Under the pieces are notes generated by a model. It saw only the letters and a list, made by a program, of their open reading frames with translations, was not told the DNA's origin and did not search any database. A DNA stretch of 64,000 nucleotides from Podarcis pityusensis (lineage: Eukaryota), in NCBI GenBank assembly GCA_964106645.2, contig OZ067045.1. One strand, 5' to 3'. Each line of letters starts with the position of its first letter. Position 1 is the first letter of the stretch. Positions 2,159 to 33,847 of this stretch are shown in pieces. A program made the translations under genes and the position numbers.

Positions 2159-2296
2159 CAGGCATAGGCAAACTCAGCCCTCTAGATGTTTTTTGAGACT
2201 ACAATTCCCATCATCCCTGACCACTGGTCCTGTTAGCTAGGGATGATGGGAGTTGTAGTCCCAAAACATCTGGAAGGCCGAATTTGCCTATGCCTG
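2159..2296. mobile_element. Palindromic hAT MITE (138 bp)
   Basis: TIRs CAGGCATAGGCAAA / TTTGCCTATGCCTG; near whole-length fold-back; 8-bp TSD CCTTACAC/CCTTACGC. Confidence 0.9.
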
Positions 2297-4744: not shown

Positions 4745-6998
4745 TGAAACTGTTCTTAACCTGAAGCACCACTTTAGCTAATGGGGCCTCCCGCGGCTGC
4801 CGCGCCACCACCGTGTGATTTCTGTTCTCATCCTGAAGCAAAGTTCTTAACCCGAGGTACTATTTCTGGGTTAGCAGAGTCTGTAACCTGAAGCGTCTGT
4901 AACCTGAAGTGTATGTAACCCGAGGTACCACTGTATATGTAAAATGCCTTTCAAATGTTTACTTGGATTTAACAAGAAATAGCACTTAAATAAACTGGGT
5001 TGTCGGTGGTCTGCTCCTCCATCAGAAGAAAACTGAATGTGTAACAGACTCCCTTCAGAATATCCTGAGGCAAAATGTGCTTTTGGCACACTTGACAATA
5101 TGGAAGAAACAGACACCTGCTGTTTGGTGTTTTGATAGACCAGCACTGAGGCCTGCTGTTTCTCAGCTTGTGAACTATAGAGTGGGCAGTGGGGTGGGGT
5201 GGAAAGCGGAGGGCACCCTGTGGCGCTCCAGATATGTTTGGCTCTCATCATCCCAGCCAACTGGCAATGCAGGCTGCAGGGGCTAACGGAAATTGGAGTC
5301 CAATGACTTCTGGAGGGCCACAGGGCAGTTACCCCTGCCAGACAGAGGCTCTAGTGATCCATTTCTCCTCCATTTTGTTTTTCAACCCAAGGAGCCAGGG
5401 CAGGAGGAGGCTGTGTCTAAGCAGAAGGAGGGCAGGCAGGGAGAGGCAGCAGCTTCCCCCTTCCCCCTCCTGTTGTTTTCCAGTACAAAATATCCCCCCA
5501 GAATCTTTTTCACCTGCACAATGAAAGTTATAAGGCTCCCAACCAAATATATCACACAACTATAAGCATGCGAAGGAAACAATGGGTTTCCAGTGACAGT
5601 ACCTGGGGTGGGGTGGGGGTGGGGTTTGAGAGGGATTGGTGGCTATGAGGAGGCACTTACTCCTTCCTTAGCCCTGGGTCATCCTTGCAGATCCCCTTGG
5701 TTATTTTAAAATGTCTCCCCTCCCTCATTGGGTTCCAGAGCTGGAAGTGAGGCCAGCCGAGGGGTGGGGCTTTTGGGGGGAGACGTGGACTCAGTTGTAG
5801 GGTAGCTGAAGGGGAAAGGAATGAGTCTTCTTCCCTTTCCTGCCATATTCATTTTATTAATTTATTTTGAATATTTCTAGATTGCCCCCTCAGGGTAAAA
5901 GCCTCTCAATCCAATGCGGCCCACATACATACTTGAAAATATCAAAACGAAAACCATCCACTTATATTAACTAACTTATATAAACTAAAATAGCCATCTA
6001 AAGGCATTAGGCAGCCCCAGCGGGCACACACGTACATCCTGTAACATTTAAAACAATTGCAAGGAAGTCAAATGCTGTTTAAACAATAGGATGCTAAAAA
6101 CTCAACTCAATGTTTCAGCTGAAAGCAGATGGAAGCAAGTGGGTTTTCAAGGCTGGTTCAAAAGCTAGTGATGATAGAGCCAGCCCTATATCCCTTCAGA
6201 TGGGATTCCACAAGTATGGGGCCAGCATCAAGGACCAGCTCTACCATTAGGCAGAGTGAGGCAGGAGACCTCAGGCAGCAGATGCTGAGGGCTATGGATC
6301 AGACAGAACCACCTATACCATGCAGTCCACCCAGCCACCCAAAAAGCCCTCAGGTGCAGAGGAAGACACTGTCCCACCAGCCAGTGTGGAAGCAGGATTC
6401 ACACACCAGTCCAGTTGGCCTCTGCATGTAGAATAGGGGCAGCATCTTGGCCTTAGGCAGCAAAATGTCTTGAGCTGGCCTTGGCACTCTATTTTGTCCA
6501 GTGTGAGTTTGGGACCAGATGCTTGCTGAGTCTATGCTCGCATTGGCCCTAAGCAATTTTGTACACAGGGCCATCATGGGCTCTGGGAATCTCAGCAGTC
6601 CTGAAGATGAGTCCTGCTGGAAAGTCTGAGATGGGTGAGGCAAGTGTTTTCTTAAAGCAGGTGGCATTGTGTAATTGATCTCTGATGGGCCCCCAAGGGA
6701 GAACCTTTAATCAGGGGAGGTTTTACTGGCACATCCCTGTGGGGTGAGCAGCCAGTGAAAGAGTGTGGGATAGGGTGACACAGAGCAAGCCTGCAAACAG
6801 GGAAGGTTAAGCCATGGCTTTGGAAAGGAGAAAGTGTGAGCAATGAGAAGATGGAGGACGCTAGAAAGAGACCTTGCATGTTCACAAGAGCAGTCGGAAA
6901 CTAATAAACCACATTCACACAACTTTGAGTGAAACACAGTCAACATAGTTAAATTAATGTACCCCCACCTCCAACACTTGTTATATGTAAAGTAATTA

Positions 6999-7257
6999 CA
7001 GTGGTACCTCGGGTTACAAACATTTACAAACATCTCTGGTTACAAACACTTCGGGTTACAAACTCTGCTAACCCAGAAGTAGTACCTCAGATTAAGAACT
7101 TTACCTCAGGATGAGAACAGAAATGGCGTGTCGGTCAGCGGTGCGGCAGCAGCAGCAGGAGGCCCCATTAGCTAAAGTGGTACCTCAGGTTAAGAATGGT
7201 TTCAGGTTAAGAATGGACCTCCAGAACGAATTAAGTTCGTAACCCGAGGTACCACTG
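6999..7257 (+). mobile_element. Tigger/pogo-like MITE
   Basis: TIR CAGTGGTACCTCGGGTTAC, TA TSD; same family as the 4436 and 36375 copies. Confidence 0.92.
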
Positions 7258-9904
7258 TACTTTAACCCATGATTCTGGAGGCCTGCCTTACACATGAAGC
7301 AAAGTGAGTACCAGTTCAGAACACACAAGTAGTTGCTACTTTTGCATGTGTCCTTATGAACGTGGTGGGGAGGGGGAAACTTGCTGCAGATAGAAAACTA
7401 GTGTATCAGGGTTTGGCCTCCTGTGCTTGGCTTCTACATGTGGGAAATTACTCAGAAGTACACTAATGAAATGCAGGACTCTGCAGGACTGTATTCCAAA
7501 GTTATGTGCAGTTTTCTAGCTTGTGAGTGGTTTACCATCCTGTAGTTTGGTTGTGAGCACCACCCCCATCCAGCTTTGCTGATGCCATTCTTGCCCCTGG
7601 GTTGTCCTGCATGCCTCTGAACCAAGAGGGAGACAAGGAGGAAGTGGCTGACCACCTCAAGGGGCTTCAGGAAGCACCAAGGTTGAGGTAGGACATAACT
7701 GGGTGAGAATCCACCATTATTAGGATCTCCAGATTTTGCATCCTCTGCGACATCAGCTGTTGATGCAATGAAAATGATGGTGATGCTTTGAGCACCCTGA
7801 GTATATTGTACATGGCTTGATTCATCAGAAAGATAGATAAGATAGAAATTGCAGGGGTCCTCCGATATAATAATGGGATTACTAAGCAGGGACAGTGTAA
7901 TTTCATACTGATGCCAAGTCCTTGGTTTCTGCTCTGATCATTGCAAGTGAGGTGATGTAACTGAAAAGCTGTGCTTAATGATAAGTTGCCAAAATGATTA
8001 TATTAATAACAGGTTAGATCTCCTTAGCTCCCCTGGGAAGACCCCCCTCCACACATTGAATCACCCTCAAATTACACGGCAACAACATATCATTTATGTC
8101 TGTGTATGTGTGTTTGTTTGCGGGGTGGGGGTGTCGTGTTTGTTTTTAAGCTGTGCTTACTTGAATTGACAAAAGGTGTCTTGGTTGCATTCACCCTTTA
8201 GCTATGTATCCTGCTCAAATTTAGAAGGAGGCCAACCATGGTTGGAGGGGTGAGGAGGGGTACATAGGAATTACAGGGGCCAATCTGAAATGCAGTTCTT
8301 TTGGGCACTCCGTCTTTCTCTTTCTCCCCCCCCCCTCTTGTATTCCTCATACCTGCCTTCTCCAACTTGGTGCTGTCCAGGAGTTCTGGACTGCAACATC
8401 CATCCACCCCAGCCAGCACATCCATGTTCCCATCACCCCCAGCCTCAGATGGTTGTGGGGCTGGTTGGGTGTTGATGAGAACTGTGGTTGAAAAATCTTG
8501 GGGGCACCATCCTGGTGCCACAAGTAAAACTGCCTTACGAATCTTACCAATAGGAGGGACTGAGAGGGACTCCAGCTTGCTCCTGCTTGCTCACCAGAAG
8601 TGAGGCAAGGCCTGGAGACTCAATGAGATCAGGCTAGCACTACTTAGACTGGCTTTTTCTTCCTTGGTGTGTCCTCCTTGGCCAGTGAGGTCAGCTGACA
8701 GTGTTCAGGTTGGAAGGATAGTCTAGGGTGCCCTGAGTCCACTGAGCCTCATTTACCAGCTTTGCTGATGGGCTGAAGTCCTGGTGGTACAGGAGGCAAG
8801 CTGCTGCAAAGTGGCTGCAGGAGACACCCTTGTTGCCTTACAGAAAGTCAGGAGGGGGGTCTTGCTTTGCTGCCTCCTCTACCAATCAGGCATTTAGGAT
8901 AAGGCCCCACATGGCACCGCTTTGACAACAAGGTATATAATCCACAATGCTAACAAGGTCTAGCCATACTCAGACATTCTGTTCAGAGTGAGTGAGAATA
9001 AGTATGCTCTGCCCTGCCCGCCCCCCACCATCAATCATCCTTCATGAGCTGAAGGATAGTGCCTGAAGCAGGCAGTCTTTTTCTGTCAATGCAGCCTTTC
9101 TGCATGGTACAGAAATCAGGGAAGGAGGCTGTTTACCCAAGGAGAGCAGGCTCCCCACTTCAAAAATTATCCCTCTAATGCATGGGGGGTAATGATGAGG
9201 TGGTGGGGAGAGGTCCTCCCTCTCCTTCTTTAGGATGCCTGAACAGGGCTATGTCTTGCTGCCTTTAAAGAGTGAGCCTTGTAATATTATTGCCATGCTC
9301 TAGTCGCATCCCAGGGGTGGGATTGTGTTGCTGCTGGAAAGTCAGAATCCCCTGTGCCCTCAAAGAGAGAGAGACCCCCCTGAGGGAGAGCAAGGGAAGT
9401 CTTTCTTTTACTAAATGCATTTCACGGAGTGGCTCTTAATCTCACGGAAGGAGCAAGAGGTTGAGCTTTTTGAACAACGCAAGGAAATACGATCACAGCA
9501 GCTTAAACCAACTAACCAACCATACCTCCAGGGGTTAAGTGGGGAAGGTACAGGGGTCTTCCAAATGTGAGATTGCAAGAGAAACAGATGGACTTGTGAA
9601 GTACAGTTGACAAATGCAAACTGGGTATCTGGTGCAAAATATTGCAGATGTCATGCGTTATCTAGAAAGGTTGCTGGAACTCAAGAGAGGGTCTGCAGTC
9701 ATAGTACTGATTTTTTGGGAAATGTGGTTCACAGTTAGCAAATTAAAGCCCAGGACACATGAAGGCAGCAATTTTTAAAATGTTACCTTTCCTGCCTACA
9801 GGGCCAAATAGACAGATAGAGCCACAAAGTCTTGAACACTTTGTGAACAGTCCTGGAATCAATTCTTGATGAAGAGTGATCTAGAAATATTTGAATCAAT
9901 TGAT

Positions 9905-10545
9905 TAATGTCTGGGTGGGATCATGGTCCCAAAGGGCTGCCTTTGAAAGCAGTCTGGAAATTTCCTCTGGTCCAAAATACGGCAGGCAAGTTTGTTAACT
10001 AGGACTGCATGGCATGGTAATGTTACACCAGTCTTTTTTGCTCTGCTCTGTCTTCCAGTCCATTTCCGGGCCCAGTTCAAAGAGCCACCATTAATCCATT
10101 CACCTTTAACAGCTTGGGACAAGGTGACCTGAAGGACTGTCTCTTCCATATATACTTACCTGGACATCAATATCTTCTGAGGTCCTTCTCAGGGTCTCCC
10201 CAACAAATAAGGTAATGCAGCTAGTTTATAGGGAGAGGATCTCTGTGGTGACTTTCATTGCTTATAGAGCCCCCTTTTTATGTTTCCTGGGTTTTCAGTC
10301 TTAATATATTTTAGTGACATTCAGATCTTTGGTATATTCTTGGAGTTTTAAGACTGATGACATTTTGGTGCAGCTGTGAGCTCTGTCGTATTGATTTTGT
10401 ATTTTGCTGGTAGTTTTCTGCTCTATTAGATTTTGTGGTGCTTTTATGGTTTTATTATCCGGCTTTATATTTATTTGCTTTAATTTTTAGTGGAAGCCTC
10501 CCAGAGAACATATGTTATTAGGCTGCCATAAATAAACTAAATAAA
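9905..10545 (+). mobile_element. L2 LINE 3' fragment (other L2 pieces at ~29745-29895, 55470-55900, 62745-62840)
   Basis: ccggg cccagttcaaagagcca..., T-rich 3'UTR, gtggaagcctcccagag...aaataaa tail. Confidence 0.65.
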
Positions 10546-11366
10546 AGATGCCAGCATGCCTTCCTTCTCTAGGAGGGGCAACGAGGTCAGCTTCCTCCTT
10601 TTTTGAGAGCTTCCAGGCTGTTGCTATTTTGGGGTGGGATTCGGTTCATATACTGGCCAATTCAGGTTGTGCTTGGGAGAATGTCATGCAAAAATAAAAC
10701 CCCTCGTCCCTGAAAAGATCAGACATTCTGAGATTCGGGAAGTGATGGGGAAATGCACCAGCAAGTGTAGACTAGCATTTGCTTGATGCACCATTGTCAG
10801 AATAAATGCTCATTAAATAGTCAACACTGCTTAATTTCCCTGCAAACAAATCAGGGTGAATAATCAATAAACAAGCCATCTGGAAGAGGACTTGCTCGGT
10901 GCACTTTAGCCACAATCCAGCAGTGAGTTATGTGAGCTTATCCCCAATCAGTTTCTGTAGGCTTAAGCTTGCCTCGCCCCATAGGAGATCACGGACTCGA
11001 GTGAGCTGAAAACACCACCCCACTTTTCGCTCCTCTCCCGTCAGCATCTGCCCAAGGTGAATGTTGCTCAGTTCCTTCTGACGTACAGACTATGGTCTGA
11101 CCATTTTGCTAGGATTTTTTGTTTCAGCTGCTTTGAGTTTCTGAGTTAGGGCTGGGGAACGTCTTTTCTATCAGGGACTGCATAACCTCAGAGGCAATCA
11201 GGTGGGGCGGAACTGCATGCTGACAGCTGAGGCCATGGTCAAAATTGGCTGGAGTTTACAGCACTGCAGGATTACACAGTGCCCCCCCTCTCTTTCTTAC
11301 ACACAGACAGAGCAAGGAAAAGTGGGCCTGCAGTTCCTGGAGGGCCACTTGAAACTAAGCCGGGGG

Positions 11367-11403
11367 CTGCAGGTTGTCCTGCGGGTTGTCCTGCAGGTTG
11401 TCC
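11367..11403. repeat. 12-bp tandem repeat x3 (CTGCAGGTTGTC)
   Basis: Direct reading; one substitution in unit 2. Confidence 0.9.
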
Positions 11404-13131
11404 ACTCTTCTAAGGAAAAGTGATATACAAATGCAATAAAACTCCACCCCTGGATTTCTGCTCCTTGTTTGTCCTGAGGCTGCTGCAACCATGGAGAATC
11501 ATAAAGTAGTCAAGCAGTCACAGAGACCGGTCCATTGTTATGCAACTGGCCCACCCACCCACATGCTTCACCTTCCCAGCCCTTTGATCATCCACGCCAT
11601 GCACAATATGCCACAGAAACTCATTGTTTTGAAAGCACATGCTCCACTTAAGTGGCTCCAGCAAGAAACCCACCCAGTAGCACACCACAGGGGAGCATCA
11701 TGCACACCCTACCGCATACTGGGGTGTGCCTTCAGCCAGTTCATCTCAGAGGAAATTCTCTTCCCTGTCACCGGTGTGGCAACTGGTGTAGTCAAAACAT
11801 GCACATATATAGGGTGGGGGAATTTAATTTATGAAATTTTTGGTTCTCTTTCATTTCATAGGACAAAAAGAGTCAGAAAAGGACCTGATTAGATATATCC
11901 ATATGGCCCCAAACCATGTGAACCTCTTGCCTCCTGCAACAGTATCAGGGAGACTGTTTCACCCCTACAGCTGAAATTCTTAAAGACCACCTTCTTCCAA
12001 GTTCTGCTTTTTCTGAGCATATCCCATCATGGCTGGGAGAGGAGGTGCAGCAAAGGGCTTAAAGAGTTTCAGGATATGCATGTATCTGTTACTGCCCCTC
12101 TCCCACAAATAAAAACCTTTTTGGATTAGCATTCTGAATAGCAGCCATCTGTTCCTGTGTTGTGTTAGATGTTAACAGCCACCACCTCAGGCACCCAGTG
12201 GCTTACCTCATGTGAATTACTTGTAAGCGGTGCTTAGAGGCAGGTTTGCAGCTATCTAGAGTAAAATCCTGCTATGCCGTCTTGACACAGTGACTAGTGG
12301 GGAAAACATATTGTACACAGAATTCTCCAGAGCTCAGATCAAAGGTTTCTAAATGATAATGGACACCCGCAGGGGGTGTTATCAAGACATGGTCACAGGA
12401 CCCTTTACAATAAGGCAAACTCCCATCATACTGCAATCATTGCCCTTCTCTACAGGAGCACATGTTTAGCTGCACAGGCACACACAACCCAACAGGAAAA
12501 GCCGCCTCAACTCTTCCTAACATAGGACAGGATCTCTAACCAGACTTACTTATAGTGGCAAAAAGTTTATGAGCCTCCAAAGTTTAAGAAAATAAACACC
12601 AGGAAATCTAAAACAGAAGACTGAGACTATACTACTCTAAAACATATTGAATTCTACCAAATGAAACACTTTTCAACTTGCCCACACCCATTGTGCCCAC
12701 TCTCATCAGAAACATTTCCACTCCTCTCTGCTCACTCTTTGTTTTTTTTTAGTATATGTGCTGCCGAAGCGAGCACATCTCTGCTCACTCTTTGTCTCAC
12801 TATTTCCAACTCTCATTTACTACAGCTAACAAAAGTGAACAATTTATAAAACGTAGACACTTAAAAACCAACAGCAACCCAACAGTAAAAAGAACAAGCA
12901 ACAGAAACTACCTTTCTGAATTCTGTCTTAAAAACCACCTTATTGCAGCCTTTTAAATAAAAATTCAGGCAAAGTAGAAAGAAACTTAGCATGCCTACTG
13001 ATTAGCACTGGCCATTTTAAGCCACTGATCAATCTCCTCCAGCCACATGTTGGCACCAAGCAATAAAACATCAGTTGTCCCTAAAGGTTAAATGAACAGA
13101 AGTTTGTGTCCCTCTTTTCATTCTCACTGAC

Positions 13132-13222
13132 CATCAGCATCATAATGTTTCCAGATGTCCAAGAACTGGGAGGCGGTGAGCTCTGCCAGGTGCAGATAAG
13201 GGGGCTGCTGCTTCCCTGCCAT
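13132..13222 (-). CDS. CALB2: Calretinin coding exon 1
   Basis: Minus strand translates MAGKQQPPYLHLAELTASQFLDIWKHYDAD+G, matching the recalled calretinin N-terminus (human MAGPQQQPPYLHLAELTASQFLEIWKHFDADG). 91 nt, followed by phase-1 donor G|gtcagt. Exon 2 was not found in 1-13131, so it probably lies left of the window. Confidence 0.97.
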
Positions 13223-13318: not shown

Positions 13319-13324
13319 TTTATA
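13319..13324 (-). promoter_or_regulatory. CALB2 TATA box
   Basis: TATAAA on the minus strand ~100 nt upstream of the CALB2 ATG, implying a TSS near 13290. Confidence 0.75.
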
Positions 13325-13354
13325 AGCCTTTCAAAGCTTGCAGAAGGAGGCAAC

Positions 13355-13371
13355 GTCCACTAGAGGGCACA
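13355..13371 (+). promoter_or_regulatory. CTCF-like motif in the CALB2 proximal promoter
   Basis: GTCCACTAGAGGGCAC matches the CTCF core consensus CCASYAGRKGGCR. Confidence 0.65.
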
Positions 13372-13413
13372 CAGGCTGTTGAGGAGGCGGCGGCGGCAGC
13401 AGCAACGGAAAGA

Positions 13414-13479
<66 letters not shown>
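13414..13479. repeat. Compound (GT)n(GA)n microsatellite
   Basis: Direct reading; ~90 bp upstream of the CALB2 TATA box. Confidence 0.95.
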
Positions 13480-13480
<1 letters not shown>

Positions 13481-15007
13481 GTAGGTCTGTGCCAGTGTGT
13501 GTTCTAATCTGGAAGTTCTACAACCTAATGAAAGCAAAGTACTTGGGTGCATGACAGATGACAGGGAGGGAAGTCTGCATGAAATATCTGAGTTACATCC
13601 GTTAAACATGTGCAACTCCTGGTTTCTGAACAGGGCAGCTAATCATCTGAGACAGTCTTCATAGTTATCAGACAGACCATGCATGGTCTGCCCCCAACAA
13701 AACCCACTGAAAATAATGAAGAAAAGCCATGTCATTTGTCTTGGGACAGTGGCAGCAGATGGCAGGATTGGCATAGGGATTTGTAGCATTTTCCGGGAAT
13801 GGAGAGGGCCAAAAAACAGGAGCAGGTGTAGCTGCTCCTGAGAAGTGATTCCTTCTCTGCCTCTCTTCCCCTGCAGCCACACAACTGGAACCTTTGGACA
13901 CCTTCCACTACCAACAGAGGATATCTGAACCAAACTGCAATTAGTTCTATAAGATTGTTCACCCCAGAGTTTGGCACATTCAGCATTTTGGACAGAGGAG
14001 ATCCCAAGTATTTCAGACTCTTGCCATGACCTTATCTGACTGGGAATGTGGCTACTGCTCCCTTGACATCCAATGATATACATGGGGTAGTTTGGGGGGT
14101 GGCATGCAATACGGTTAATCAGTGGGAGACTTTGCCGTAAAACTGGTGAGGCAGCAAATTGAGGGCACGTTTCCTGGGCATCTGGAGGGCGCCAGGTTGG
14201 TGAATGCTGGACTGCATCATGACTCAGTCTTGCAAGGGGAAAGCAACTGCAAGAGGCACCCTAACTTCTCCTGGGAAAGGGCTCCTCAACTGGCACCTGC
14301 TCACTGAGGAGGACATTGCCGTAGCCCCCTCTAACCTCCAAGGGCCAGCTGCTCCTATCCAGTCCTTTGCAGTACCAGGATTTGGTCAATGGGCTCAGTC
14401 AATCACCCCAACTGCAGTTTATCCAGCTTTTCACAATATTGTGGCAACAGAGGCCATTGGCTCCCCCCCCCCCGGGCTCCCTCTTTTCCGGGGTCATCCA
14501 TTTTCTGCTGGCTAGTCACTCAGCCAGACAGCCAGTCCTTGTGACAATGGCACATTGCAGGAAAGGTCCCTGCTCCTCCTCCCTCCCTCCCTCTAATTGC
14601 ACTGCCTCCTCTCTTTCTCACGCACACTAAGCATCACTTGACCCCACCAGCCCTGCCAGCTGGCTCATTTTTCACAGAGAAGAGTCCCTGCTTCCGCTAA
14701 CTCAGAGGTCGCTGGAGGATGCTGGGATCACACCATCCTCTTGCCGAAGGTGTCCCATTAGTGCAGTAGGATTCACCTAAATCTCTGGAAACAGAGCTAG
14801 AGGAAGAGGCATAGGGCAACTCTGGCCATAAGCTTTGCATTATGCACCAGAGCAAAAACTGGCATGTGCAAGCAGCCTTCAGACAGACAGAGAGAGAGAG
14901 AGAGAGAGAGAGAGGGCACAGCAAAGCAAAGCAAAGCAGAACTCTTCCGGTTCTGCTCCTTCTCCTTCTAAGTTCCCCATCCCATCCCTACATTATGTCA
15001 TGGGTAC

Positions 15008-15594
15008 CAATTTTGATGAAATTGAACAATAAGCAAAATTTACTCTGCCGGATGCAGAGTACAAAACTGTCAAAAGAAGGCAGAGAGTACACACACACCC
15101 CTATGATGGGACAGCACCTGAAGCCTTAGCCTTAGATGAACTTTCTCTGAGAGGCAAGTTTAGGGTAAATTCATTTATCCCTGTCATGCATGCTCTTGAA
15201 GCCAACCTAGACAGAAGAGCAAGGGGGTATAGGAGTGTACAGGAGTACGGCTAGCTATTTTTCATTTTGGGTGAACCTGCAAGCAACCGAGGAGCAGATT
15301 CACAATGGCATTGAGATTATTGATGCAAGAGTATCCAAAGGATGTTGACCTTAGTCTAGTCAATGAACTTTGCATTTCCACCTGTATGTCAAACTAGGTC
15401 ACGATGAAAAAGAAAATTTCAGCCACCAAGATATGTATCAAATAACATCCCAGGAGAAAATTCAAACAGCTTTTGCAAATGTGGAAACAATTTTCAGATT
15501 GTTCCTGAGTTTAATGGTTACAAACTGTACTAGCGAAAGATCATGTTCTAGACTAAAAAGGATAAAGAATGATCTACGGTCAACAATGTCCCAG
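15008..15594 (+). mobile_element. hAT transposase C-terminal remnant (dimerisation domain), disrupted
   Basis: ...AFANVETIFRLFLSLMVTNCTSERSCSRLKRIKNDLRSTMSQ fits the hATC motif ERxFSxLKRIKxxLRSTM; upstream fragment KFRVNSFIPVMHALEANLDRR; stops and frameshifts present. Confidence 0.85.
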
Positions 15595-16834
15595 GGTTCT
15601 GGGATGGTTGTGCAAGGTCTCTGAGAGGCTCTCATGAGATCTTGGACAGCCTTGGCCTTGCAAGATCTCAAGAGAACAGAGGGGTTGGTTTGGAGAAGGT
15701 CATTCTGATTTTGCACAATTTTGCCTTTATGCACAACCAATAGGACCATAACCCTCGTGTCAATTGCAATCACCCTGTATTTGATGATGTTGATGATGAT
15801 GATAGGCAAAGTTTTCTATACTGCCTACATTAATACTGCTGTGTAGGAACAACATAAAATCAACAGTAATATTACGTTAATGAAACAATCCAGAATACAT
15901 GCATCACCAGAGCACAGGTGAGCAGCACCAATGCAGCTCTCTCAGCACAGGTGTGGTGTGAGATGCTGTCCCCTTTCAGCCCCCGCAGCCATGTTCCCGC
16001 TGCTGCATTCTGTCCTAGCTGGGCTACCAGGTCAGTTCAAGGGACTGTCCCTCATAGAGTGCATTGCAGTAACCCAAGCTTGGAGGAATGTCCGGTTCCT
16101 GGAAAGGGCAGACAAGCTTTTATGCGAAGAAGAAACCATTATTCCTGGCAACTGCAAGAGGGTGGGTGTTCGAATAAAAACAAAGACTAAAAATCTTGCC
16201 TTTGTTAATGTTTTTAAATGATGCCATGCAGAAGAATTTGTTCTAAGGTCACTCACACAGACCTGCTTACTGAGAATTCATCCTGATTTGTTTGCACAAA
16301 GTTTGTGAGGATGACCTCAACTGTTGAACATCAATTCTGATTTGTTTGCCGGGAGGTTATATGGTGTTGCATCAAGCAATTGTTATCTCTCAACTTTGCA
16401 GTGCATTTCCCCATCACTCTGCTTATTGCAAAAAGTCTTTTTTTGGGGGGGGGGGATGGGTTGTTTGTGGAAGAACACCAAACCAACTTTAACTGACAAT
16501 CTGAATTTGCCTGTAAGTGATTGAATCCACTGGCAACCACCTGGAAGCACCACAAGTATTGTGAGAGATGGCTTCAAAAGTGCATTTTCCTCCTGCTTTC
16601 CAGGTGGCTGGGGGCAACAGTGGTGGTGGGGAGATGAGCCTATCTTCTGGGTTGTGGGGAGGTGAGCAAATAAAGGAGTGAGTAACTTTTAGCATATCTC
16701 CCAGCTTAATACTCCCAGAAAGCGTCTGGTGTTCCTTTGTTTAACTTTGAATTTATAAGTGATTGGGGAAGATGGCAAAGATTTACAGGAAAAGGAGACA
16801 GTAATCCATGGATTTGGTAAGTATTACAGCTTCT

Positions 16835-16885
<51 letters not shown>

Positions 16886-19046
16886 CATTGCTTGTGTTAA
16901 CATGCCTTGCCAAATTAATAGAAGGGATGTTCCATTCTTCCCTCACAAGGCCGAAATAGGGCTTCCCTCCTCAGGTGCAGGCTACCTTTCTTATAGCAAA
17001 AGCTGGATGTTAGCGGTACTTTGTAACTGTTACTCAGCTCTGCCTCCATCCTTAGGGGGAAATACAGGTTTTCTTTGTAGGTGGCAGATAGGAATAAAGA
17101 GAAACCAGATGGTCCTCTTTATTAACAAAGCTGTGGTGAATTTTAGGTGGGGTGCAAAGGGGCGAAAAAGGCAATAGAGGCAATAGAAGCTACACTGGAT
17201 AGCTTTACCTAGTAGAGGGAAAGAATAAAGTCCCACTGGCAGATGGTACATGCAGTAGCGGCCTGTTAGGTGGCACATGGGGCACTGTTGCTCTCCTGGC
17301 TTCCCAACACAAGAGGTCGCTAGCACTTAGCAAGAGGGAGAGGGGAGCGAGCGAGCGAGTGAGATGCAGAGAGTATGGCACAGTGCTGCATATGGTGATG
17401 GAGCCAATCTGACACTCCCACCATCTTGTGCCACACTGCATCATACTCTCTGCACCTTTCCCCTTTCGGTAAGTGCCAGGGGCCCTTTGTGTTGGGAATC
17501 TGGGAGAGCAACAGTGCCCTACCCACACCACCTCACCCGCAAATACTGGGTGCAAGATCCTCTTCCTCAAGTTTTGGATCCTGCTGTTGTATGGCTAATG
17601 TCCAGCTAATGTGCTTCACAGAACTGTTCTCTCTTTTTAAAACCCCACCTAGAAGATGGTCCCATTTCAGGAGAAGAGAGTGAGGTTTCCATAGAGGTTT
17701 CCTGCAGTGCCAGTTATCGTTTGGATTGTTTGCAAAATCTGCTTTCTGACATTTCCTGCCACTTACAAAATATCCAGACCCTAAGCAAGATCTTCCTTCT
17801 TTTCCATCACCTGCTCTGACAACTGCTCTCATCTGGAGGGAAAGTGCATTGCCATGGATACCAGAGGGAAAAGAAGGCAGGTTCCAAAAGAAAATGTTTG
17901 TCAGACATAAATGGTTAATTAAAGATTAAAGGAACACTGAATGGTTCTAGAGTGCTCAGGGGTGGAAAGAAAGAGCTCTCTGTCTCCTGGGGTGAACACT
18001 GAATAGCCGCTCAGGCTGTACAGGTAGCACTAAGTGTCTCTGTGTGGCACACTTCGATGGAGTTGTTTGTTGGGGGGGGCGGAATACAGGAGGGACTAGG
18101 TCTGATGTAGCTTAGTGGTGCCACCTAGAGTGTCTGGGATTCTTACGCCTGAAGTTAACCTTGAATGGACAGCTATTTACTATAATGTACAGTCTCTGAA
18201 TAAATATCTTCCAGCTGAGCTCTTCAAAACAGTGGATCAACTGGTCTCAGCTGGGCAGACCTTTTGAAATGTATGCTCAGAGTGATCAGGGAGCTGGAAC
18301 TAACCTCTCAGTATCAGAGATGGAGCAGATTTCATGATTAGGCCGAATGGCCCATCTCAGAATAGAGCTGTCACTAAAACTTTCCCCATTGTGCTAAAAT
18401 AGTATGGCTCAGCTACATGTTTGTGTTCTAATGCTAGTTCCCAAGGTTCTGCCAAAAAAGCAGAAGAAAGTTACGGGTTTTGAGAACATAAAACTTTCCT
18501 CTTTGTTTATATTTTTTCCTAGAGCTGGGGTAGAGGAAAGGGTCCTGAGGGAAAGGGATTCAGAAACTCCCTCCTACAGATGACAGTGCAAGCTTCTCTT
18601 CTCAGGCTGATAGCAGGGATGGCGAGCGGTGATGATTTTTGGTGGGACAGATGCACAGGAGGAAAGTATTAAACCACTTGCCATAAGCTAGAGTCCGCCT
18701 CCTCCTGCAAGACACTATTCTTAAAGTGGGGAAAGAGCCACATGAAACCCATCCCTGCATTTCGCCTCTCCTCTGTTTTGGGTCTCAGATACAGTATTGC
18801 CTGAAGTCAGAAAGATAGACAGGTGCATTCTTTGCTCTGAGAGCTTCAAATGATAGCTAGGAAGAGGGGGAAAGGAGGGAGGCCTTTGCAAGCAGCTGAA
18901 TGTCTATATTAATTATTAAGGGAATGATATGGCTGCATGGATATAAATATTTCACTCTTTCCAGTTCAGTGCCTTTCTGACAGGGCAGCGATGATCTAAA
19001 GGAAGAAGTGAGGCCTTTTAACATTATTACCATCATCATTATAGTA

Positions 19047-19266
19047 TTACATTTATATTCCATCTCTTCTCCAACGAGCTTGAGGTGGGGTGCACACTTC
19101 TCTCCTCCTCCATTTTATCCTCACAACAACCCTGTGAAGTAGGTTAGGCTGAGAGATAGTGACTGGCCCAAGGTCACTCACAGGCATTCATGGTTGAGTG
19201 GGGATTTGAACCCTGTTCTCCCAGGTCCTAGCTGGACACTCTAACCACTGTACTGCACTGGCTCTC
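19047..19266 (-). mobile_element. Older Squam3/MIR-like SINE (relatives at ~3570-3722, 25548-25745, 53020-53130)
   Basis: Shared core cctcacaacaaccctgtga...ggcccaaggtcac...tttgaaccc. Confidence 0.8.
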
Positions 19267-19562
19267 AAAGTGGTCTCTTCAGTTCACTGGTCTGTTTTAC
19301 AGTGAAAACACCAGGATAACAAGCTCCAGGAAGGAGGAGCTGCTCCATTGAATCATGGAGGCAGAAAGTTCCACCTGCCTGCATTGTATCCGGAGGGCAG
19401 GACACCTGCTCCCCAGTTCCCTGGTCAGCCCTCAGAGCAAGTTCCCATTGGAGCTTGCCAGGCAGAGAGATGGCTCAAGAAGGGTGTCAGGCTACACCCC
19501 TGAGGGAAAGCAGAGCCAATATCACATACGGTACCTAGAACTAAAATGATTTCGATTATGTA

Positions 19563-19564
<2 letters not shown>

Positions 19565-19604
<40 letters not shown>
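19565..19604. repeat. (AAT)n microsatellite
   Basis: Direct reading. Confidence 0.95.
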
Positions 19605-19606
<2 letters not shown>

Positions 19607-21530
19607 TCTTAATATCTGTTTAGCTAGTTGGGACACTGCTTTATACATATTAATTTTATTGTTATTAATTTATTTTTTAATTCCTAAAATTTATACACTT
19701 GATAGTAAAATCTTTTTTACTTTATGGTAAAAAAAACCCAAAGCATTTTACAAAAAGTTTTTTTAAAAAATGAATAAAAAAAATGAAAGACCACTCTTTT
19801 TTCTCCCCTGGAAAGATTAAAAATCCAGAAGTAAACAATTGAAAAGGCTATAAACTGTCCATTTGCTATCCGGGAACTAAACTGGTCTTTGTTAATTTTT
19901 CCCAAACATATTTCCTCTTATAATCCAAAACGAGTTAGGGAACATTTTCTTTAAACATGCTGAAAGTTCAGCCAAGTGTCCATGAGTTATTGTGGACCTG
20001 CTCTGACTGTGCTTATGTAAGTCGGCAATGGGAGAAGTCTATGGGAGTCCACACTGTTGCATTGGAAACATGAAGAAGGATTAGCCATAGTGCTGCCTGC
20101 TGTAGTACTCGTTTTACTTCACTATGCTCCACTGTATATATTTTTCCATAAAATAAATATTACAAAGACATGGGAGTGTTTAACTAAGTCTATTCAGAGC
20201 AGCCCCATTGAAATTAAGGAACCTAAGCTACTGATGTCTATTAACTTCAGCTGGTCTACTCTGAGTAGAAATAGCATTGTATACCATCTCTTAAGTCTCC
20301 TATGTCCTCCCATCCAAAGGAAATGAAAGCCTTTAATGCTGCCCTGGAATTCTCGCTGCTCGGATAAGTGGGGAAGCACTTAACAATGCATTTTTGCTCA
20401 TCTTTTATTAGCAAAGACATTCACTCTTTGAGAAAAGCATGTGGATTTGGGTCACTATCTGGTAAGGTTTGGTTTCACGAAACAAAAATTATTTTAGACA
20501 GCCTGGGGCAAACACAGTTTTGCTCTAAAAGGTTGCTTGACAGCTCCAGAATGGTTTCTATCATGCTAGGTGGGAGTTGAGTCTGAGAATACACTCTGCC
20601 ATCCAACTTTTTGTTTTATTATATATTTTGTGCTTTCATTTTGTTGCATGGTGTAATCTCAAAGCTGTGAACATGTACATTCTTTAGTGACAGGGTTGGC
20701 CACAACAACTATGGGCTCAAGAGGTAGACCAAAGAGCAGCTGTAACCATTGTTATGTGTTGTGCCATATTTGTACCAATTTCCCAAAAATTTCAGTGCAA
20801 AACAGGATGGCAGGTCAAATGCACAATGTACAAATGATACAGACAAGGCCAAAGTTATATGTGGCTAGCTGTGATAGACAGTATATCCTGAAACATTCAT
20901 CAGATAATGCTTTCACGTATAACCTGTTCAGCATAAGTGAAGCTGGTATAATTACCACTGCAACACCCAAAAGCGTTTCCATACATTGATCTCAGTAGGA
21001 GCAGTTGACCTAGGAGGCATTTTGACCTTGGCAACATTACTTCCAGAGCTGACCAGTGACATAAAGACCAGCGGCCTGACATGCAGGGGTAATGGCACTC
21101 CTGCGTTTAGCCCACAGTTCATATTGTGATCCAGGAAGCTTGATCTGACTAAACAGGGTGCACAAAGACAATGTTCTTGCTCTTGTAACTCTAAAATGCT
21201 TACTGTGAACTCTGTCAGTGACCTACTATGTAATATCATTTCCTGGGAGCAGATTGCATATCCCTTGTGCCACACAGAAATGCTCCAGACTGGAGAACCT
21301 GAAACCGTGTTTGTAAACCATCACCTTAACAACATTTGCAAATACGAAGGAGTGGAAAGCCAATACACTGGAGCAAGAACCTTAAGCCTGGTGAAATATT
21401 CAAGTTAAGCCACAAGGACCTAGGTTAGAATAATCATTCCTGGGACTCAAAACTGTTATTTTATCCCCCGTTACAACTGTTGTTGTTGCTGCTGCTACTA
21501 CTAATCTTAATAATGCAGTCAATGAACATT

Positions 21531-21667
21531 GCAAGAGTAGAGCATCTTTTGCATGCAAAAAGTCCCAGGTTTAATCCCTGGTATCTCCATGTAGGGCTGA
21601 CAGAGACCCCTGTCTGAAAGCCTAGCGAGCTGCTGCCAGTCAGTGTAGACTATACTGAGCTAGATGA
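21531..21667 (+). mobile_element. tRNA(Ala)-like SINE fragment
   Basis: gtagagcatc..tgcatgca..gtcccaggtttaatccctgg head; body shared with the 24125 and 48400 copies. Confidence 0.7.
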
Positions 21668-21971
21668 GTGACACCCAAGTCCCCACCTCTCTCTTTCTCT
21701 CTCCCGAGACACAAAAACATTGTTGGCTCCTATGTTTTCCCAAAAGTTGAAAATGTTATCCTTGATGTTGCTAGACTAAAATATTCTCACCTTAATCTCT
21801 TTACTTTTTCATTCGAACACCGTTTTTTAAATCACTGTGCTCAGTGTGAGATTTTTACCATGGAATTAATAGTATGCTGCTAATGCTACTCTAGTCAGAT
21901 AAGGAAGAGGTCAATTTGCTTGTCTGCTACTGAACCAAAGTCACAAATGAAGTGTGGTAGTGTTGAGAAGT

Positions 21972-22034
21972 GCCTGGCGTGCTCTGGTCCATGGGGTCAC
22001 AAAGAGTCAGACACGACTAAACAACTAAACAACA
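21972..22034 (+). mobile_element. BovB/RTE LINE 3' terminus (63 bp)
   Basis: gcctggcgtgctctggtccatggggtcacaaagagtcagacacgact..aacaac; 13-bp TSD AGTGTTGAGAAGT (21959-21971, 22035-22047). Confidence 0.88.
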
Positions 22035-22620
22035 AGTGTTGAGAAGTTATTCGTTCCTTCTGCCAAGATTGTCTAGGCGTGCATGCACTTTCTGTCTCTG
22101 TCTCTGTCTCTCTCTCACACACAGCCATAAAGTACATTCATTGTCTTCTGCAGATTTTTTTTTTTTTTTTTTTTGGGTCAGTGTACAGACATTGTTGTCT
22201 TTATATTGTTGGTAAATTATTTGGTGTTCTGAAAGCACCTTTTGGTAGAATGGTTATAAGCCATATTACATTTTTACAACACAATCTGAAGCCCCCGTTG
22301 CCTTGTGTGAAAACTGAGAACACCTTCTCAGGGACCCTCCTATTGTGGAGAGTACTATGATGTTGTTGGGCTGCGTATGTGTAGCCCCTCCTCCCCATTG
22401 CTTTGGAGATTAGCCTGAGTCATTTGGCAGGGGTGGACTTTGGTAATCTTTCATAATATGGTGCCCTGTGCAAGATCAAAATTTGGTACACCAAAATGGA
22501 TCTTCTCTATTATGGATCTTCTCAGGCCTCAGACAAGCTCTGCACAGGCCTGTGAATTCCTGAATACTGCATTACAGTATAGAGATCAGTTCAACCTCCT
22601 CTCTGTAGCAAAATGACAGT

Positions 22621-22871
22621 AGAAGAAGAAGAGTTTGGATTTGATATCCCGCCTTTCACTCCCTTTAAGGAGTCTCAAAGCGGCTAACAATCTCCTTTTC
22701 CCTTCCTCCCCCACAACAAACACTCTGTGAGGTGAGTGGGGCTGAGAGACTTCAAAGAAGTATGACTGGCCCAAGGTCACCCAGCAGCTGCATGTGGAGG
22801 AGCGGAGACGCGAACCCGGTTCCCCAGATTACGAGACTACCGCTCTTAACCACTACACCACACTGGCTCTC
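22621..22871 (-). mobile_element. tRNA-derived SINE, Squam3-like, young copy
   Basis: Minus strand begins GAGAGCCAGTGTGGTGTAGTGGTTAAGAGCG (A box), has a GGTTCGCGTCT B-box-like motif and a (TTC)n tail; CpGs retained. Confidence 0.85.
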
Positions 22872-23618
22872 AAGGAAATTTCAGTTGTGGTACTTCTTTG
22901 TTTCTCTTTATGCTCCACAGGCTCCAAGTGTCTCTGAAAGGATCTGACAGCCTTATTAGAGGATCTGATGGCCTCAATACACTATCCAAAACCCACAATC
23001 TACCTTTATAGGACCCTATTGGGTAGTGGGAAATTTGATGTGAAAGCCTCTAGAGAGGACTAGAACAGAGAGTTTGACTGGCCATTACACTTGAGACAAT
23101 GGCAGACTGTGTTGGCCTCCAGAAGGTTTTGCTCACAGGCTGCTCCTAATCCAGCAAAAACTTGTATTTCTGGCATATTGGACTCATCATCACCTTTGTC
23201 AGAAATGTCTTTCACCTATAGATACCTTCTAGTGCTGCAGTACACCAGGGGCAGCATTGAGGTAGGTTGTGGGAGGGGGAATTAGTTTGCATCCTCACCA
23301 GTACAATGTATTTTATTTTATTTTAGTTTAGTTTATTTTGTTCTTTCCTTTTAGCCACTGCCAAAACTGGCGAGGTCACCCTTGTAGCACACTATGCTGG
23401 ATTGGTGTGGAGAGCAGGGAAATCACAGTGTCTTTGCAGGCTTGCTGTGGCCCAACTTCCCCAATCAATACTGGTATCCTTGTCGGAGCAAGAACAACAA
23501 ATAACAGTTCAAAAAGAAATTAGAAACCCCAGCTAGTCCAATGTTGCTTTAAGGCGCTTCTAGTCTTCCTCCTCTCACTCCCTGGGGCTAATGGCTAAGG
23601 CTTGCCTGCCAGCCAGCA

Positions 23619-23695
23619 GTTGCCATGGCGCTGGAAGGCCTGCAGCCTTCTGTGTATGCGCCCTGCCAGAGGGAAGGCCCTGTTGCTATGGGAAC
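23619..23695 (+). promoter_or_regulatory. HYDIN promoter region with two RFX X-box motifs
   Basis: GTTGCCATGGCG (23619-23630) and GTTGCTATGGGAAC (23682-23695) resemble the X-box GTTGCCATGGCAAC. RFX factors are established regulators of motile-cilia genes. Confidence 0.65.
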
Positions 23696-23803
23696 CAGAG
23701 TAACAGCCACAGGCCGGCAGGGAGAAAGAAGGCCTAGAAGTTGTGGAGCTGCTCTGGAGGCAGCAGCAGCAGTCGTAGCAGCAGTAGCAGGAGGACCAGG
23801 CAA
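23696..23803 (+). other. HYDIN: Probable HYDIN non-coding exon 1 (5' limit uncertain)
   Basis: GC-richer, GCA-repeat segment next to the X-boxes, ending at a donor CAA|GTAAGT (23804), 3.4 kb before the ATG-bearing exon. Confidence 0.55.
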
Positions 23804-24800: not shown

Positions 24801-27197
24801 CTTATGTATATGTTACAAGAGACTTTCAAAGCAGCTTACAGAAGTTTCCCAGAATAAATCATATTCAGGTTTAATATCAGGAGCAAAAATTACATGGTGT
24901 CCCTCTGGTGCTAAGTGTTCTGCCTGCCTCCTCCTCTCTGCTGCACTTTTGCTCCTTATCTATTGTGCAACAGCCCTGAGGCACACAAGGGAGCAGGGCT
25001 GTGTAGCTGGATCTCACTCAGGCCATGAAGGAGGCAGGTCTTCTTATAGCTTCTTAAGTGCCTCTAGGTTGGAGTTCATTTATCTCCACCCTACCTCCCT
25101 GTGTCTCATTTCTGAGCCTTCTACCATATAAAGAGGCTGGGGACAGAGGAGATGTAAGCACTGATACCTTCATGTTGAAAGATTTGAAATGGAAGCAGAA
25201 CATGAAAGGAGAGATCTGTTGGAGCTGGGATGCACATTTCAGGGTCACACGCAGTTGAACATCTGTATTATTGCATATAGCAGGAGGCAAAGGTGCTACA
25301 GTGGAATATTGCTACCAATGCCTTTTTGAAATGCCATCTGCTATGCTTTCAAGTTCCTATAGAGCCCTCAGATAGATCACAGTGTTTCAGTTCTTACTGA
25401 CAGGAAAGAGAAAGTGTCAAAAGCAGGCAGGTAAGAAGCTTGCTGTTTGCCTTTTAAATTGTCAGCTGCCATAGATAACCATATGCCTTCCTCCCAAATG
25501 AGCCTACTCACTAAAAATAGCATTTCTTTTCCTATGTATTTTTTATTATGTAGTTATATCCCATCCTTCCTGAAATGAGCTTAGAGTGGCCTACACAGTT
25601 CTCTACTCCCTCCTCCCTGCCCTTACAACAACCCTATCAGGTTGGTTAAGCTGAGAGATAACGATTGGCCCAAGGTCACTTAGTGAGCTTCATAGCTTAA
25701 GGGGGTTGTGAACTCAGGACTTCCCAGTCCTGCTCTGAATTCACTTTCAACCATGCCAACTTCAACTGGATTCTTCTCCAGGGCTCCATTTACCGGTAGT
25801 TGTCTTTAAAGGGGCCTCCCCACACTGTAATTTGCAAGTGTGCTTTGGAATCTGTGCTTCCAGAAATATAATATTTAAGATTATGCAGTGAATAATAAGC
25901 AATTTTTTACATAGTGTAAAGTATTTCCAGTCTGTGTTTGATAATTTGTAGGGGGGGAAATATGAAGACAGGACAGTAGATTCTTATATATTGGCCATTG
26001 AGATGAAATTGGTTACATTATCTGTACAAGGGCAGCAAATAACTCATGGAAGCCAGTTTTTCGTAGCAGATTACTGTACAGATACTTCCAGGCGGAATAT
26101 TTCTCAGGAGTTTGGCATGCTGATTCAGTGCACCAATAGTAATGATGATGAGTGAGCTTCCCCAGCTTGCCTTGGATTGCTCTCCCCCCCCCCCAGCTTT
26201 CTAGGAGAAAGCTTAAAAAAACCAGAGATCACTCCGTTTCAAGCCTGCCCGCTCCCTGTTCCAACAAGCATCTTTTTGAACAACCTTGAGGATGTACTTA
26301 GTTCCTGCTTGGGTGCAGTGAACTTGTTTTCTAGGCTTTTTGGTTTATTCATTGAATTGGGAGGCCTAGAAAACTGTAACTCCTATGAATTGTGGCAGGA
26401 AATTACAGTCCAGCTAAGGAGAGGTCCACAAGACCTTTCCAGTAAGCCTTCCTTGCCATTAAGAGCTCAGTTAAGAGCCCATGATCCCTTTCAAGTAAGA
26501 TGCTCCTACATTCAGATAGAAACTTGCAAGGGTGGTGCATTGTCTGCTGCATCTTCAAACAACCAGGTTCTGTTCTGATCCAAATAAACAGTCCTGGCCA
26601 TTAGCAGATAGCAAGGTGGGACTGGGCGGGTCATCTGACCTCCCTCCAATGAAGTTGCCACTGCATACCAGGATGAAGAGGGAGATGGGAGCAGTGACGA
26701 CAAGGTCAGCGTGATGCTAATGTGCTGGTAGAACCGTTCTGACACTCCTACTAGCACATTTGCACAGCACCAACCTTGTGGTCTCCCCTCTCTATCTCAG
26801 TATGCAGCAGCGACTCAGCTGGAGTGAGAGATGCAGCCACACCGTGTCATCTGCTAATTGGAAAGGGGGGCTCAAGGCACCCGTTACACATCACACAAAA
26901 AAGGGAGTGATAACTGGGTAATGGAAGGCTGACAATTCTCTTGTTATTGGAATACAGACAAACAAAAATCCATGTAAATGAGAATATCAGATCTTGAGAC
27001 TGCTTCTCTACTAATTTTCACTTTGAGTTTCATATTGATATATTTTTGAAGGGAAATAATTGGCAGCCATTCTCAGTTCAGTGATAGTCAGGACTGAAAC
27101 TCAAGCAGAATTGTGAATTCCTGGAGACTTTTTTCTCACTGTTTAAACCAAGTTTGTTGTTGTTCTTATTCCAGAGGTTCTGACAGATTAATCAAAG

Positions 27198-27317
27198 ATG
27201 CTAACAGACCGAGTCCAGAAATCCTTGGGTCCCCACAAGTTCTCAGAAGAATTTCAAAGCAAGGTGGTGGTACCTCACATCCCAAAACTGGTCAAAGAAG
27301 AAAAGAAGCATGCCCCA
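27198..27317 (+). CDS. HYDIN: HYDIN first coding exon (exon starts at 27175)
   Basis: ttccag acceptor at 27174; in-frame TAA at 27189; MLTDRVQKSLGPHKFSEEFQSKVVVPHIPKLVKEEKKHAP (cf. human FQSKVLPPLSPKVV); donor gtatgt, phase 0. Confidence 0.88.
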
Positions 27318-28981
27318 GTATGTTTGCTTGCGCTCAGCTGATCTAATACCTGGCCAAGTCATTGAATCTGCCTTTGTGATAATGACTCCTGAACACCTTT
27401 TATTTTGTCATGCCTTAGAGCTTATCCACATTTACCTTTCCTCCATGCTTTCCAGGCATGGTGAACACTTTAAAGCACCGTGTTCAGACACCCCCCTTTT
27501 TCTCTCTGGAGCTTTCCCCTCAAAAAACTGCTCTTTAAACCTGAATTGGAGCAAATGGCAATCCGTGGAAAATCCACATTGCCATTTGTTGTGCTTCGGC
27601 TTTTAAGACTGGGCTCTTGCACAGAAAGCTCAGGGGGTGGGGAAGTCCTTGAACATTGAGCTTTAAAGTGCGCAACATGCTCGGAAAAAGCAGGACAAAA
27701 AGTAAGTCTGAATAAACCCTTAATGTGAGACAGTAAGCAAAAGACAGTGCATTTTAAATACAATGTCCATTTTAGATCAGGATGGACAGAAAGTAGATGA
27801 GCATCTTCTGGGTGAGTTTGCAGTAGACTGGCAAGGAGGGCTTCTAACTTCCAGCTGTTTAGTGCTAGGAGAGAAAAAAATGTCTCTTCCTGCCCTGCCC
27901 CCCAAATTAGACTGATTGCAGAAATAGTCTGAGGTGACCAGGAGTGCATTTCTGTGCATAACAACTGTGGGCTCAGTTTACTTCTAGTGTTCAAAATTAA
28001 TTCCTGGGCTCAAAATTGTTTCTTTCTAAGACTATGACGTTTGCACCAGGCTGGTAGATCTCAGGGTTCTAGTAGAATAAGAACAGCAGATCCTGCAATC
28101 TGGACATCTGTCCACTCCTGTTTTTGGTGATGTTTAGGCTTTATGTTCTAAAAACAGAAAAACCTGTCACTGATTAAAATACCCCTTAGTGTGTACTGAA
28201 GACCAGAAGGAGACTCATTGAGGCGGAGAGAGACAATGATTCACCAGTATATGATGGATTGTGTGTGTGTGTTGTTAAGTCTATAAGTTTGAGGAAGAGA
28301 GCTTCCGCTGGTTCCCTTTGCTTGTTCTTTTGCTCCCTACATAGGAGCAAGAAGACAAGGTTATCAACACTTGTCAAAACCACTTGTAGTAAAGAGGCAT
28401 GGCAGAAGTCAATAGGAAGGGAGTTCCGCAGTTTTGGGGTAATCACTGAGACAAAGATGCACACAGTTTGATAAATTATTATTATATAATTGCTGTCCCA
28501 CTTTCCTTATTAGTTTGTGAGACACAAAGTGGAAAACGAGCTTATGCTTTTCAAATATTCCCACCCTGTCTCTGGCTGCAACTCTTAGCCAGTTTATTTG
28601 TCATTCTGTACATGAGCCTAAGTCTTTTATTGTGCCCCTCGCCCTTTAAGCATCTAGAGAAATTAGCTCTACCAAAATCCCACAATCTCTCTCTAAAATA
28701 GCAATGGAATTTAATTACTTTGTGCCTTAACTGCTGACTTTGTTCAGCACAAGAGAGAAACCATGCAGACATCTGAAAATCTTGCAAGCAGGTGCCATTT
28801 CCAGCAAGAGTTCCTTTAAGATAGGTTGAATGGAAGTCCTGCATCCTGAATTTTAAATGTTTCAGCAGGAAAATTAATGGAGGTCTAGGATTCAGCAGTG
28901 AACACATATTAATCAGAAGTGCTTAACAAGTAAAGCCTTTCTTAACTCAGGCATTTATGTGGTCTTTGTTTTCAACTGCAG

Positions 28982-29107
28982 TTGACTCCATCTGCCTTCC
29001 TGAAAGCAATGACTCTGACGACGGAGCAGATGCTGGCAAACACCCATGAGGTGCGCCGGCCTCGAATTGTGCAGCTTCTGGACATGAGCGAAACCTCACA
29101 CCAGAAG
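28982..29107 (+). CDS. HYDIN: HYDIN coding exon 2
   Basis: LTPSAFLKAMTLTTEQMLANTHEVRRPRIVQLLDMSETSHQK; AG/GT bounded, phase 0-0. Confidence 0.95.
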
Positions 29108-29838
29108 GTATCTCTTCCACATTCATCCCTATTTATTTGTGACATAACACATTAACATAATTATATACTTGCTGGCTGATGGGAGTTGCAGGCCCAAACA
29201 TCTGGGGGCACCAAGTTGAGGAATGCTGATCTAGTTGTTCAGCCTGTAGATTTGCAGTCCCAAGAGGGTTCTAGTGCCATCATCCAAAAATGTCTGACCA
29301 AAGTTTGCTATGGATGTCCAGTGCCTTTGTTATCTATTTTTAACGCTATATGTTAAAAACTGGTAGTCCACACATTCTTGTACGTTTGATTTAATCTCAG
29401 TTGCGCTTGCTCCTTCCAAATAATTGCCACAACCTTCCTATTCGCTACCATCAACAAGACTGGTAGTTCTTTTTTCTCATGTCTCTGACATGATGCTGAA
29501 AGAGACCCATGGAATGCCTTTATGTGCTTTCATTAAGAGAGGCAGCCACAACAAACTATGCTTGTTGTGGCCTAGGATAAATATTATGGGCTAGTTTCTT
29601 AAATTACTGTCCAATGTATATCTCCAATTACTGTTTATTTAAGGTAATTATTATCATTTACTCCCATAAGTCCTAGAGCTGAATCATGAAAGTGTGCAAT
29701 CCTATGCACACTTTCCTCTGAAGGCAGCCCTGTTTAGGGAAGTTTTTAATGTTTGAAGTTTTATTCTGTTTTTGGTGTTCTGTTGGGAGCTGCCCAGAGC
29801 TGCTGGGGAAACCCAGCCAGCTGGGCAGGGTATAAATA

Positions 29839-29886
<48 letters not shown>

Positions 29887-30276
29887 TATTATTATAGTAT
29901 TGAACACAGGGTGACTTGGTGCTGAGTGAACATGTGTGGGCTTTGGTTCTGAAGTTGGTAATTTGCCAGCAGCAGCAGACTGATTATATGTTGCCTGGTT
30001 AAACAGCCTGGAAGAGACGAACCTATGAAGGCTAAGCAGGAGATAGTGGTACACAACGGCACTGAGGCATAACCAGAGAAAACAGGACTAACCAACCCAT
30101 GTAATAGGTCTGTTGGAATACTACTAGAATGGCATGCTACACTTTCCTGAATGCCTGAAGTTGTACCTTTCCTTTGGAGCAGGATGGCTCCACTCTGAGT
30201 GGCACTGGCCTGTCCTGCTTCCCAGTCCTGCAACTGCCAGGCAGCATTTACATGCATCCCTTTGTGTCTTCTTCAG

Positions 30277-30396
30277 TTCTCTTCTGTTGATCTGGACCAG
30301 TCTCTGTTTCAACCATTCCCGTCAGAAGTGATTTTCCAGAATTATGCCCCTTGTGAGATGTATGAAGTGCCACTAATTCTGAGGAACAATGACAAG
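30277..30396 (+). CDS. HYDIN: HYDIN coding exon 3
   Basis: FSSVDLDQSLFQPFPSEVIFQNYAPCEMYEVPLILRNNDK; AG/GT, phase 0-0. Confidence 0.97.
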
Positions 30397-33780: not shown

Positions 33781-33847
33781 TACTTCCCTTACTGATGTCA
33801 TTGTGGTTTTGCTGCCATTGCTGCACATTTGTTGGTACCATGTATGC

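Follow-up and report, generated by a model that had tools for sequence, protein, structure and literature searches.

What has become of CMTR2, the dedicated cap2 methyltransferase, in a lizard whose CALB2 and HYDIN genes stand directly side by side? In tilapia, fugu, Xenopus, mouse and human, a synteny survey found cmtr2 on the upstream side of calb2 (PMC7552167), and in the zebra finch VAC14 and CMTR2 are listed as neighbours in the supplement of a preprint on squamate gene losses. Both sources back the ancestral linkage of CALB2 and CMTR2 on which an earlier reading of this DNA, made from the sequence alone, had relied. In the window, that is, the whole 64-kb stretch of Podarcis pityusensis DNA analysed here, CALB2 (minus strand) and HYDIN (plus strand) are identified orthologues that are directly adjacent and point away from each other over 10.4 kb. 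The interval between them is the scene of a real and clean synteny break, by which both CMTR2 and a second gene, PNP6, were removed from the CALB2-HYDIN locus, an event of a known kind. In the literature searched, CMTR2 and lizards or snakes were not named together in any paper.

The two flanks and the interval between them

The gene models of CALB2, HYDIN and PNP6 were searched one exon at a time; the features of the locus are collected in Table 1. The 31 residues encoded by CALB2 exon 1 are the same, without exception, in the calretinins of Podarcis muralis, Lacerta, Zootoca, the gecko Heteronotia and tuatara. A TATA box also precedes CALB2 in Elgaria, gecko and one bird, at -77 to -101. Positions 1-13131 of the window yielded no other exon of CALB2, whose intron 1 must therefore be longer than 13 kb; in quail, the entire CALB2 gene occupies about 4 kb. 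The records that bear CALB2 measure 84-97 Mb in Lacerta and Zootoca, against 21-50 Mb in most other squamates, sizes that would fit a microchromosome fusion in lacertids, which could favour rearrangements.

On the opposite side, the first HYDIN coding exons were located by short motifs, and fragments similar to the exon at 30.3 kb were found in other animals. The putative first HYDIN exon, ending at 23803, is placed there on the strength of the X-boxes and the splice donor.

Both landmarks from which the sequence-only reading had measured a distance of about 10.3 kb, the CALB2 TATA box and the HYDIN X-boxes, were found again. The longest open reading frame of the interval, when counted from an ATG, is indeed 146 aa, as that reading had stated; the longest stop-free stretches reach 205 codons on the minus strand and 118 codons on the plus strand, on which CMTR2 would be expected. 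No CpG island is present between CALB2 and HYDIN. Nested inverted repeats at 17280-17519 (arms of 59 nt at 81% and, inside them, of 40 nt at 75%) are probably a small non-autonomous DNA transposon, and the segment at 16264-16548, which has a single similar counterpart in the rest of the lizard DNA compared, is probably an old interspersed repeat.

Table 1. Features of the CALB2-HYDIN locus and of the PNP6 genes used for comparison (window positions unless a locus is named)
Feature	Position	Strand	Evidence or remark
CALB2 (calretinin) coding exon 1	13132-13222	-	31/31 aa identity to Podarcis, Lacerta and tuatara calretinin; PDB matches are of the calbindin family
CALB2 TATA box (TATAAA)	13319-13324	-	-102 from ATG
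Conserved non-coding segment, collinear anchor	14542-14811	.	71% to gecko and Elgaria loci upstream of CALB2
Conserved non-coding element, X-box-like motif (17848-17861) and AT-rich core	17783-17960	.	72-78% to gecko, Elgaria
Conserved non-coding segment, collinear anchor	18880-19007	.	73-81% to gecko, Elgaria
Last three gecko-shared collinear anchors	19783-19988, 20035-20169, 20311-20398	.	nhmmer E 5e-11 to 3e-4
Junction interval, inferred former PNP6-CMTR2 site	20400-23618	.	position from bird and fish gene order; remnant of neither gene
SINE-type copies in junction interval	~21536-21666, ~22622-22860		
Two RFX X-box-like motifs, putative HYDIN promoter	23619-23632, 23682-23695	+	motif scan; function inferred
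Putative non-coding HYDIN exon 1 (approximate start)	23700-23803	+	donor GT at 23804
First HYDIN coding exons (~27.2, 29.0, 30.3, 34.8, 36.1 kb)	27187-36248	+	open, ordered, with splice signals
HYDIN exon fixing gene identity	57275-57472	+	mouse HYDIN, PDB 9ijj, E=2.8e-11
PNP6 upstream of CALB2, bird	L003 6229-13271	CALB2 strand	
PNP6 upstream of CALB2, quail	L009 394-7783	CALB2 strand	
PNP6 upstream of CALB2, stickleback	L011 254-6210	CALB2 strand	

PNP6, a second missing gene

Immediately upstream of CALB2, and on its strand, two quails, a further bird and stickleback carry a purine nucleoside phosphorylase gene, whose closest named match is fish pnp6. The bird and fish CALB2 loci extend as far as PNP6 and end before the position of CMTR2. 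Taken with the published cmtr2 linkage, the place of PNP6 next to CALB2 in birds and stickleback makes CALB2(-), PNP6(-), CMTR2(+), HYDIN(+) the most likely ancestral order. In the lizard window PNP6 is absent: the frameshift-aware score of the junction interval is 35, against a null of 36±5, while the same tests recover PNP6 exons between stickleback and birds. The sequence-only reading was right to conclude from the locus that CMTR2 had been lost or relocated, but it overlooked a second absent gene.

How far does this second absence extend? The reported complement of these phosphorylases is PNP6 only in birds, PNP4 and PNP5 in Anolis, and PNP5 in mammals (PMC5386883); PNP6 appears to be truly lost in Anolis, and its presence in fish and birds together with its absence here suggests independent losses in mammals and in squamates. 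In a tree of the last PNP exon (70 columns), whose base is unresolved, the lepidosaur matches form a clade of their own apart from bird PNP6. The case agrees with the differential loss of PNP4, PNP5 and PNP6 described among tetrapods, in that PNP6 is carried by birds and fish, unreported in Anolis and mammals, and absent from the present locus; it differs in that the CALB2-CMTR2 locus and a joint deletion are not discussed in that work (PMC5386883).

The search for CMTR2

Queries for CMTR2 came from a metagenome scan with a degenerate 10-codon motif, chosen to differ from the human residue, which gave 110 loci. One of these, L108, holds a bird-type CMTR2 that is complete in one exon and has 764 codons, counted from the second in-frame Met. 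It was assigned to a bird by reading of its sequence, and was validated by Pfam FtsJ (E=3e-26) and by an Atlas score of 0.99 to CMTR2 clusters. In all, about 70 distinct CMTR2 homologues were obtained from eukaryote contigs, coral-, arthropod-, fish- or bird-like by their sequence, and a CMTR2 profile was built from 70 sequences. Five freshwater metagenome contigs (L021, L032, L068, L070 and L080) carry stand-alone methyltransferases with the CMTR2 motif, of about 300-350 codons, which possibly come from giant viruses or protists; unlike these short forms, animal CMTR2 proteins are 750-850 aa long.

With L108 and its flanks as query, neither tblastn nor blastn gave a match in the 64-kb window. 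Frameshift-aware alignment over the whole interval scored 49 with the bird protein, against 51±6 for a lizard intronic null, and 42.5 with the 70-sequence profile, against 41.7±4.6; within the junction interval the score was 47, against 46±6. A fish contig (636) and a coral-type contig (1056) served as positive controls for this test. An intact CMTR2 is therefore absent from its mammalian syntenic position, as had been claimed, with BLAST, profile and frameshift-aware tests all blank. Decayed, collinear CMTR2 coding sequence on the expected strand was looked for as well, and only null-level scores were returned from the interval, from the junction and from both candidate fossils discussed below. 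Nor is there any scar of a former copy in the form of UTR or coding scrap, since the bird CMTR2 contig and its flanks match nothing in the window; such a scar at the old site is an optional feature of gene relocation. CMTR2 and PNP6 are both absent from the CALB2-HYDIN locus, with no detectable remnant.

Conserved elements and the site of the break

Several non-coding segments of the interval are shared with other lizards (Table 1), and one of them reaches beyond lizards. With a three-lizard profile of the element at 17783-17960, a match is obtained in the PNP6-CALB2 spacer of a bird, 1.3 kb upstream of CALB2 (E=1.3e-6), and this bird counterpart is conserved in quail too. Across the four species no reading frame is held in common; the X-box-like motif and the AT-rich core are. 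The best reading of this segment is a conserved non-coding element that probably regulates CALB2, for which it is a candidate enhancer. The segments at 14542-14811, 18880-19007 and 19783-19988, which are kept in gecko and/or Elgaria, were not detected in birds. Two further matches were rejected as anchors: one to a bird at 19272-19310 was weak and failed with the profile, and one to Elgaria at 21551-21666 reflects no more than a repeat common to both.

The interval stays collinear with gecko up to 20398, through its first 7 kb, and with Elgaria up to about 19300. In the bird, the upstream distance from the CALB2 ATG to the end of PNP6 is 6.4 kb, five times that to the conserved element, whereas in the lizard the element itself already lies 4.6 kb from CALB2. 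On this scale, the old CALB2-PNP6 spacer would account for nearly all of the 10.4-kb interval and, given the gecko anchors that run to 20398, the point at which the block is missing would fall within 20.4-23.6 kb. This junction interval is bounded by the gecko anchors on one side and by the X-boxes on the other. Since the gecko and Elgaria sequences cover no more of the spacer than its CALB2-proximal part, their empty 10-kb flanks are uninformative on CMTR2 in those species.

Relocation, loss or artefact?

Where, then, did the block go? In the lineage leading to this lacertid-like lizard, a block carrying PNP6 and CMTR2 would have departed from the locus, fusing the CALB2 upstream spacer to the HYDIN promoter somewhere in the junction interval. 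CMTR2 would persist at another site, through a rearrangement or through duplication and subsequent deletion of the original, and cap2 would still be made; PNP6 may simply have been lost. That CMTR2 has relocated elsewhere in this genome is held to be somewhat probable, because the gene falls outside a published loss list, is widely retained, and is needed in mouse and zebrafish. The list comprises 53 genes that are unannotated in all 30 RefSeq squamates, and CMTR2 does not figure among those named (PMC13005343), so that at least one squamate probably has CMTR2. The supplement of the preprint on squamate gene losses mentions CMTR2 for the zebra finch only, as far as its available part goes. Being outside the 53-gene list is not specific to lacertids, and could reflect the outgroup filter of that study (PMC13005343). 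Against relocation, the apparent loss of PNP6 in Anolis and the deletion of IL34 show that deletions do occur in this neighbourhood.

A tentative alternative, less probable, is that one segmental deletion took PNP6 and CMTR2 together and left this lizard, and perhaps lacertids as a whole or an even larger group of squamates, without a dedicated cap2 writer, in which case cap2 would be lacking or CMTR1 would stand in for the missing enzyme. Two neighbouring genes are cleanly missing, as such a deletion would leave them, and the published PNP complements (PNP4 and PNP5 only in Anolis, PNP6 only in birds) speak for it too. Segmental deletion is the common route of squamate gene loss, and it includes IL34, which lies beyond HYDIN-VAC14 and is deleted in squamates (PMC13005343). 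The resemblance to the IL34-type losses (Salve, Sonal and Vijay 2026, PMC13005343) is close: conserved flanks have become adjacent, no remnant is left, and the chromosomal neighbourhood, COG4-SF3B3-IL34-MTSS2-VAC14-HYDIN, is the same. The two cases differ in that CMTR2 is not in the 53-gene set and that its absence is known here from the one locus. Viability of zebrafish cmtr2 nulls, whose males are fertile, and redundancy of CMTR1 and CMTR2 in invertebrates would make a loss easier to accept, but the place of CMTR2 outside the pan-squamate loss list (PMC13005343) counts against it, as do embryonic lethality and sterility in mouse and the all-male zebrafish mutants, which suggest selection to retain the gene.

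Could the block instead have vanished from the assembly, through a collapse or mis-join in 20.4-23.6 kb? These 3.2 kb have no outgroup anchor and contain SINE-type copies, which would suit such an error. It is nonetheless very unlikely: there is not a single N across the 64-kb window, 82-83% of sampled interval words are found in two same-species runs from two studies and 32-70% in three related species, the first 7 kb are collinear with gecko, and the loss of PNP6 in Anolis was reported independently (PMC5386883).

The last alternative is a unitary pseudogene, a CMTR2 that died in place and whose remains, at 17720-18405 or elsewhere in the interval, have become too old to see. By simulation, the largest divergence after inactivation at which a dead CMTR2 is still seen is about 0.5 substitutions per site for an entire copy, about 0.4 for a 690-nt half and about 0.3 for a 300-nt piece, so remnants beyond about 0.5 substitutions per site or below 300 nt escape detection; CMTR2 remnants could hide in the interval only if very old or small. 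Two segments resemble CMTR2 by eye, and neither was retained. The one at 17720-18405 is blank in Pfam and scores 41 and 33, which 28-38% of random intronic pieces attain; its core has a conserved counterpart in a bird between PNP6 and CALB2, on the side of PNP6 that is wrong for CMTR2. The other, at 21.2-21.4 kb, has a score reached by 16% of null pieces, and Pfam, PDB and Atlas searches with the candidates gave no match. In view of these scores, a gene that decayed where it stood is scarcely credible.

What the missing gene would mean

CMTR2 is required for development and fertility in mouse, and for female zebrafish. The sequence-only reading had tied the interest of a loss to the sensing of self and non-self RNA by RIG-I. 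That rationale is weakened by a preprint (bioRxiv 10.64898/2026.07.28.741271) in which loss of CMTR2 caused no innate activation in human cells or mouse tissues and zebrafish nulls were viable; the link of CMTR2 to RIG-I is contested. If CMTR2 has only moved, which is the reading preferred here, the locus adds one more synteny break to a rearrangement-prone lizard genome, and is of minor interest. Should CMTR2 and PNP6 instead have been deleted and be absent genome-wide, for which the case is less than persuasive at present, wall lizards or a wider squamate clade would live, go through meiosis and have offspring of both sexes while lacking a dedicated cap2 methyltransferase. Nature would then have supplied an amniote knockout of an enzyme on which embryonic development and fertility depend in mice, and the formation of females in zebrafish. 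A true loss would open the question of what cap2 is for, and of whether vertebrate CMTR1 can substitute as it does in flies and worms; its bearing on the germline and on sex development would outweigh any bearing on RIG-I.
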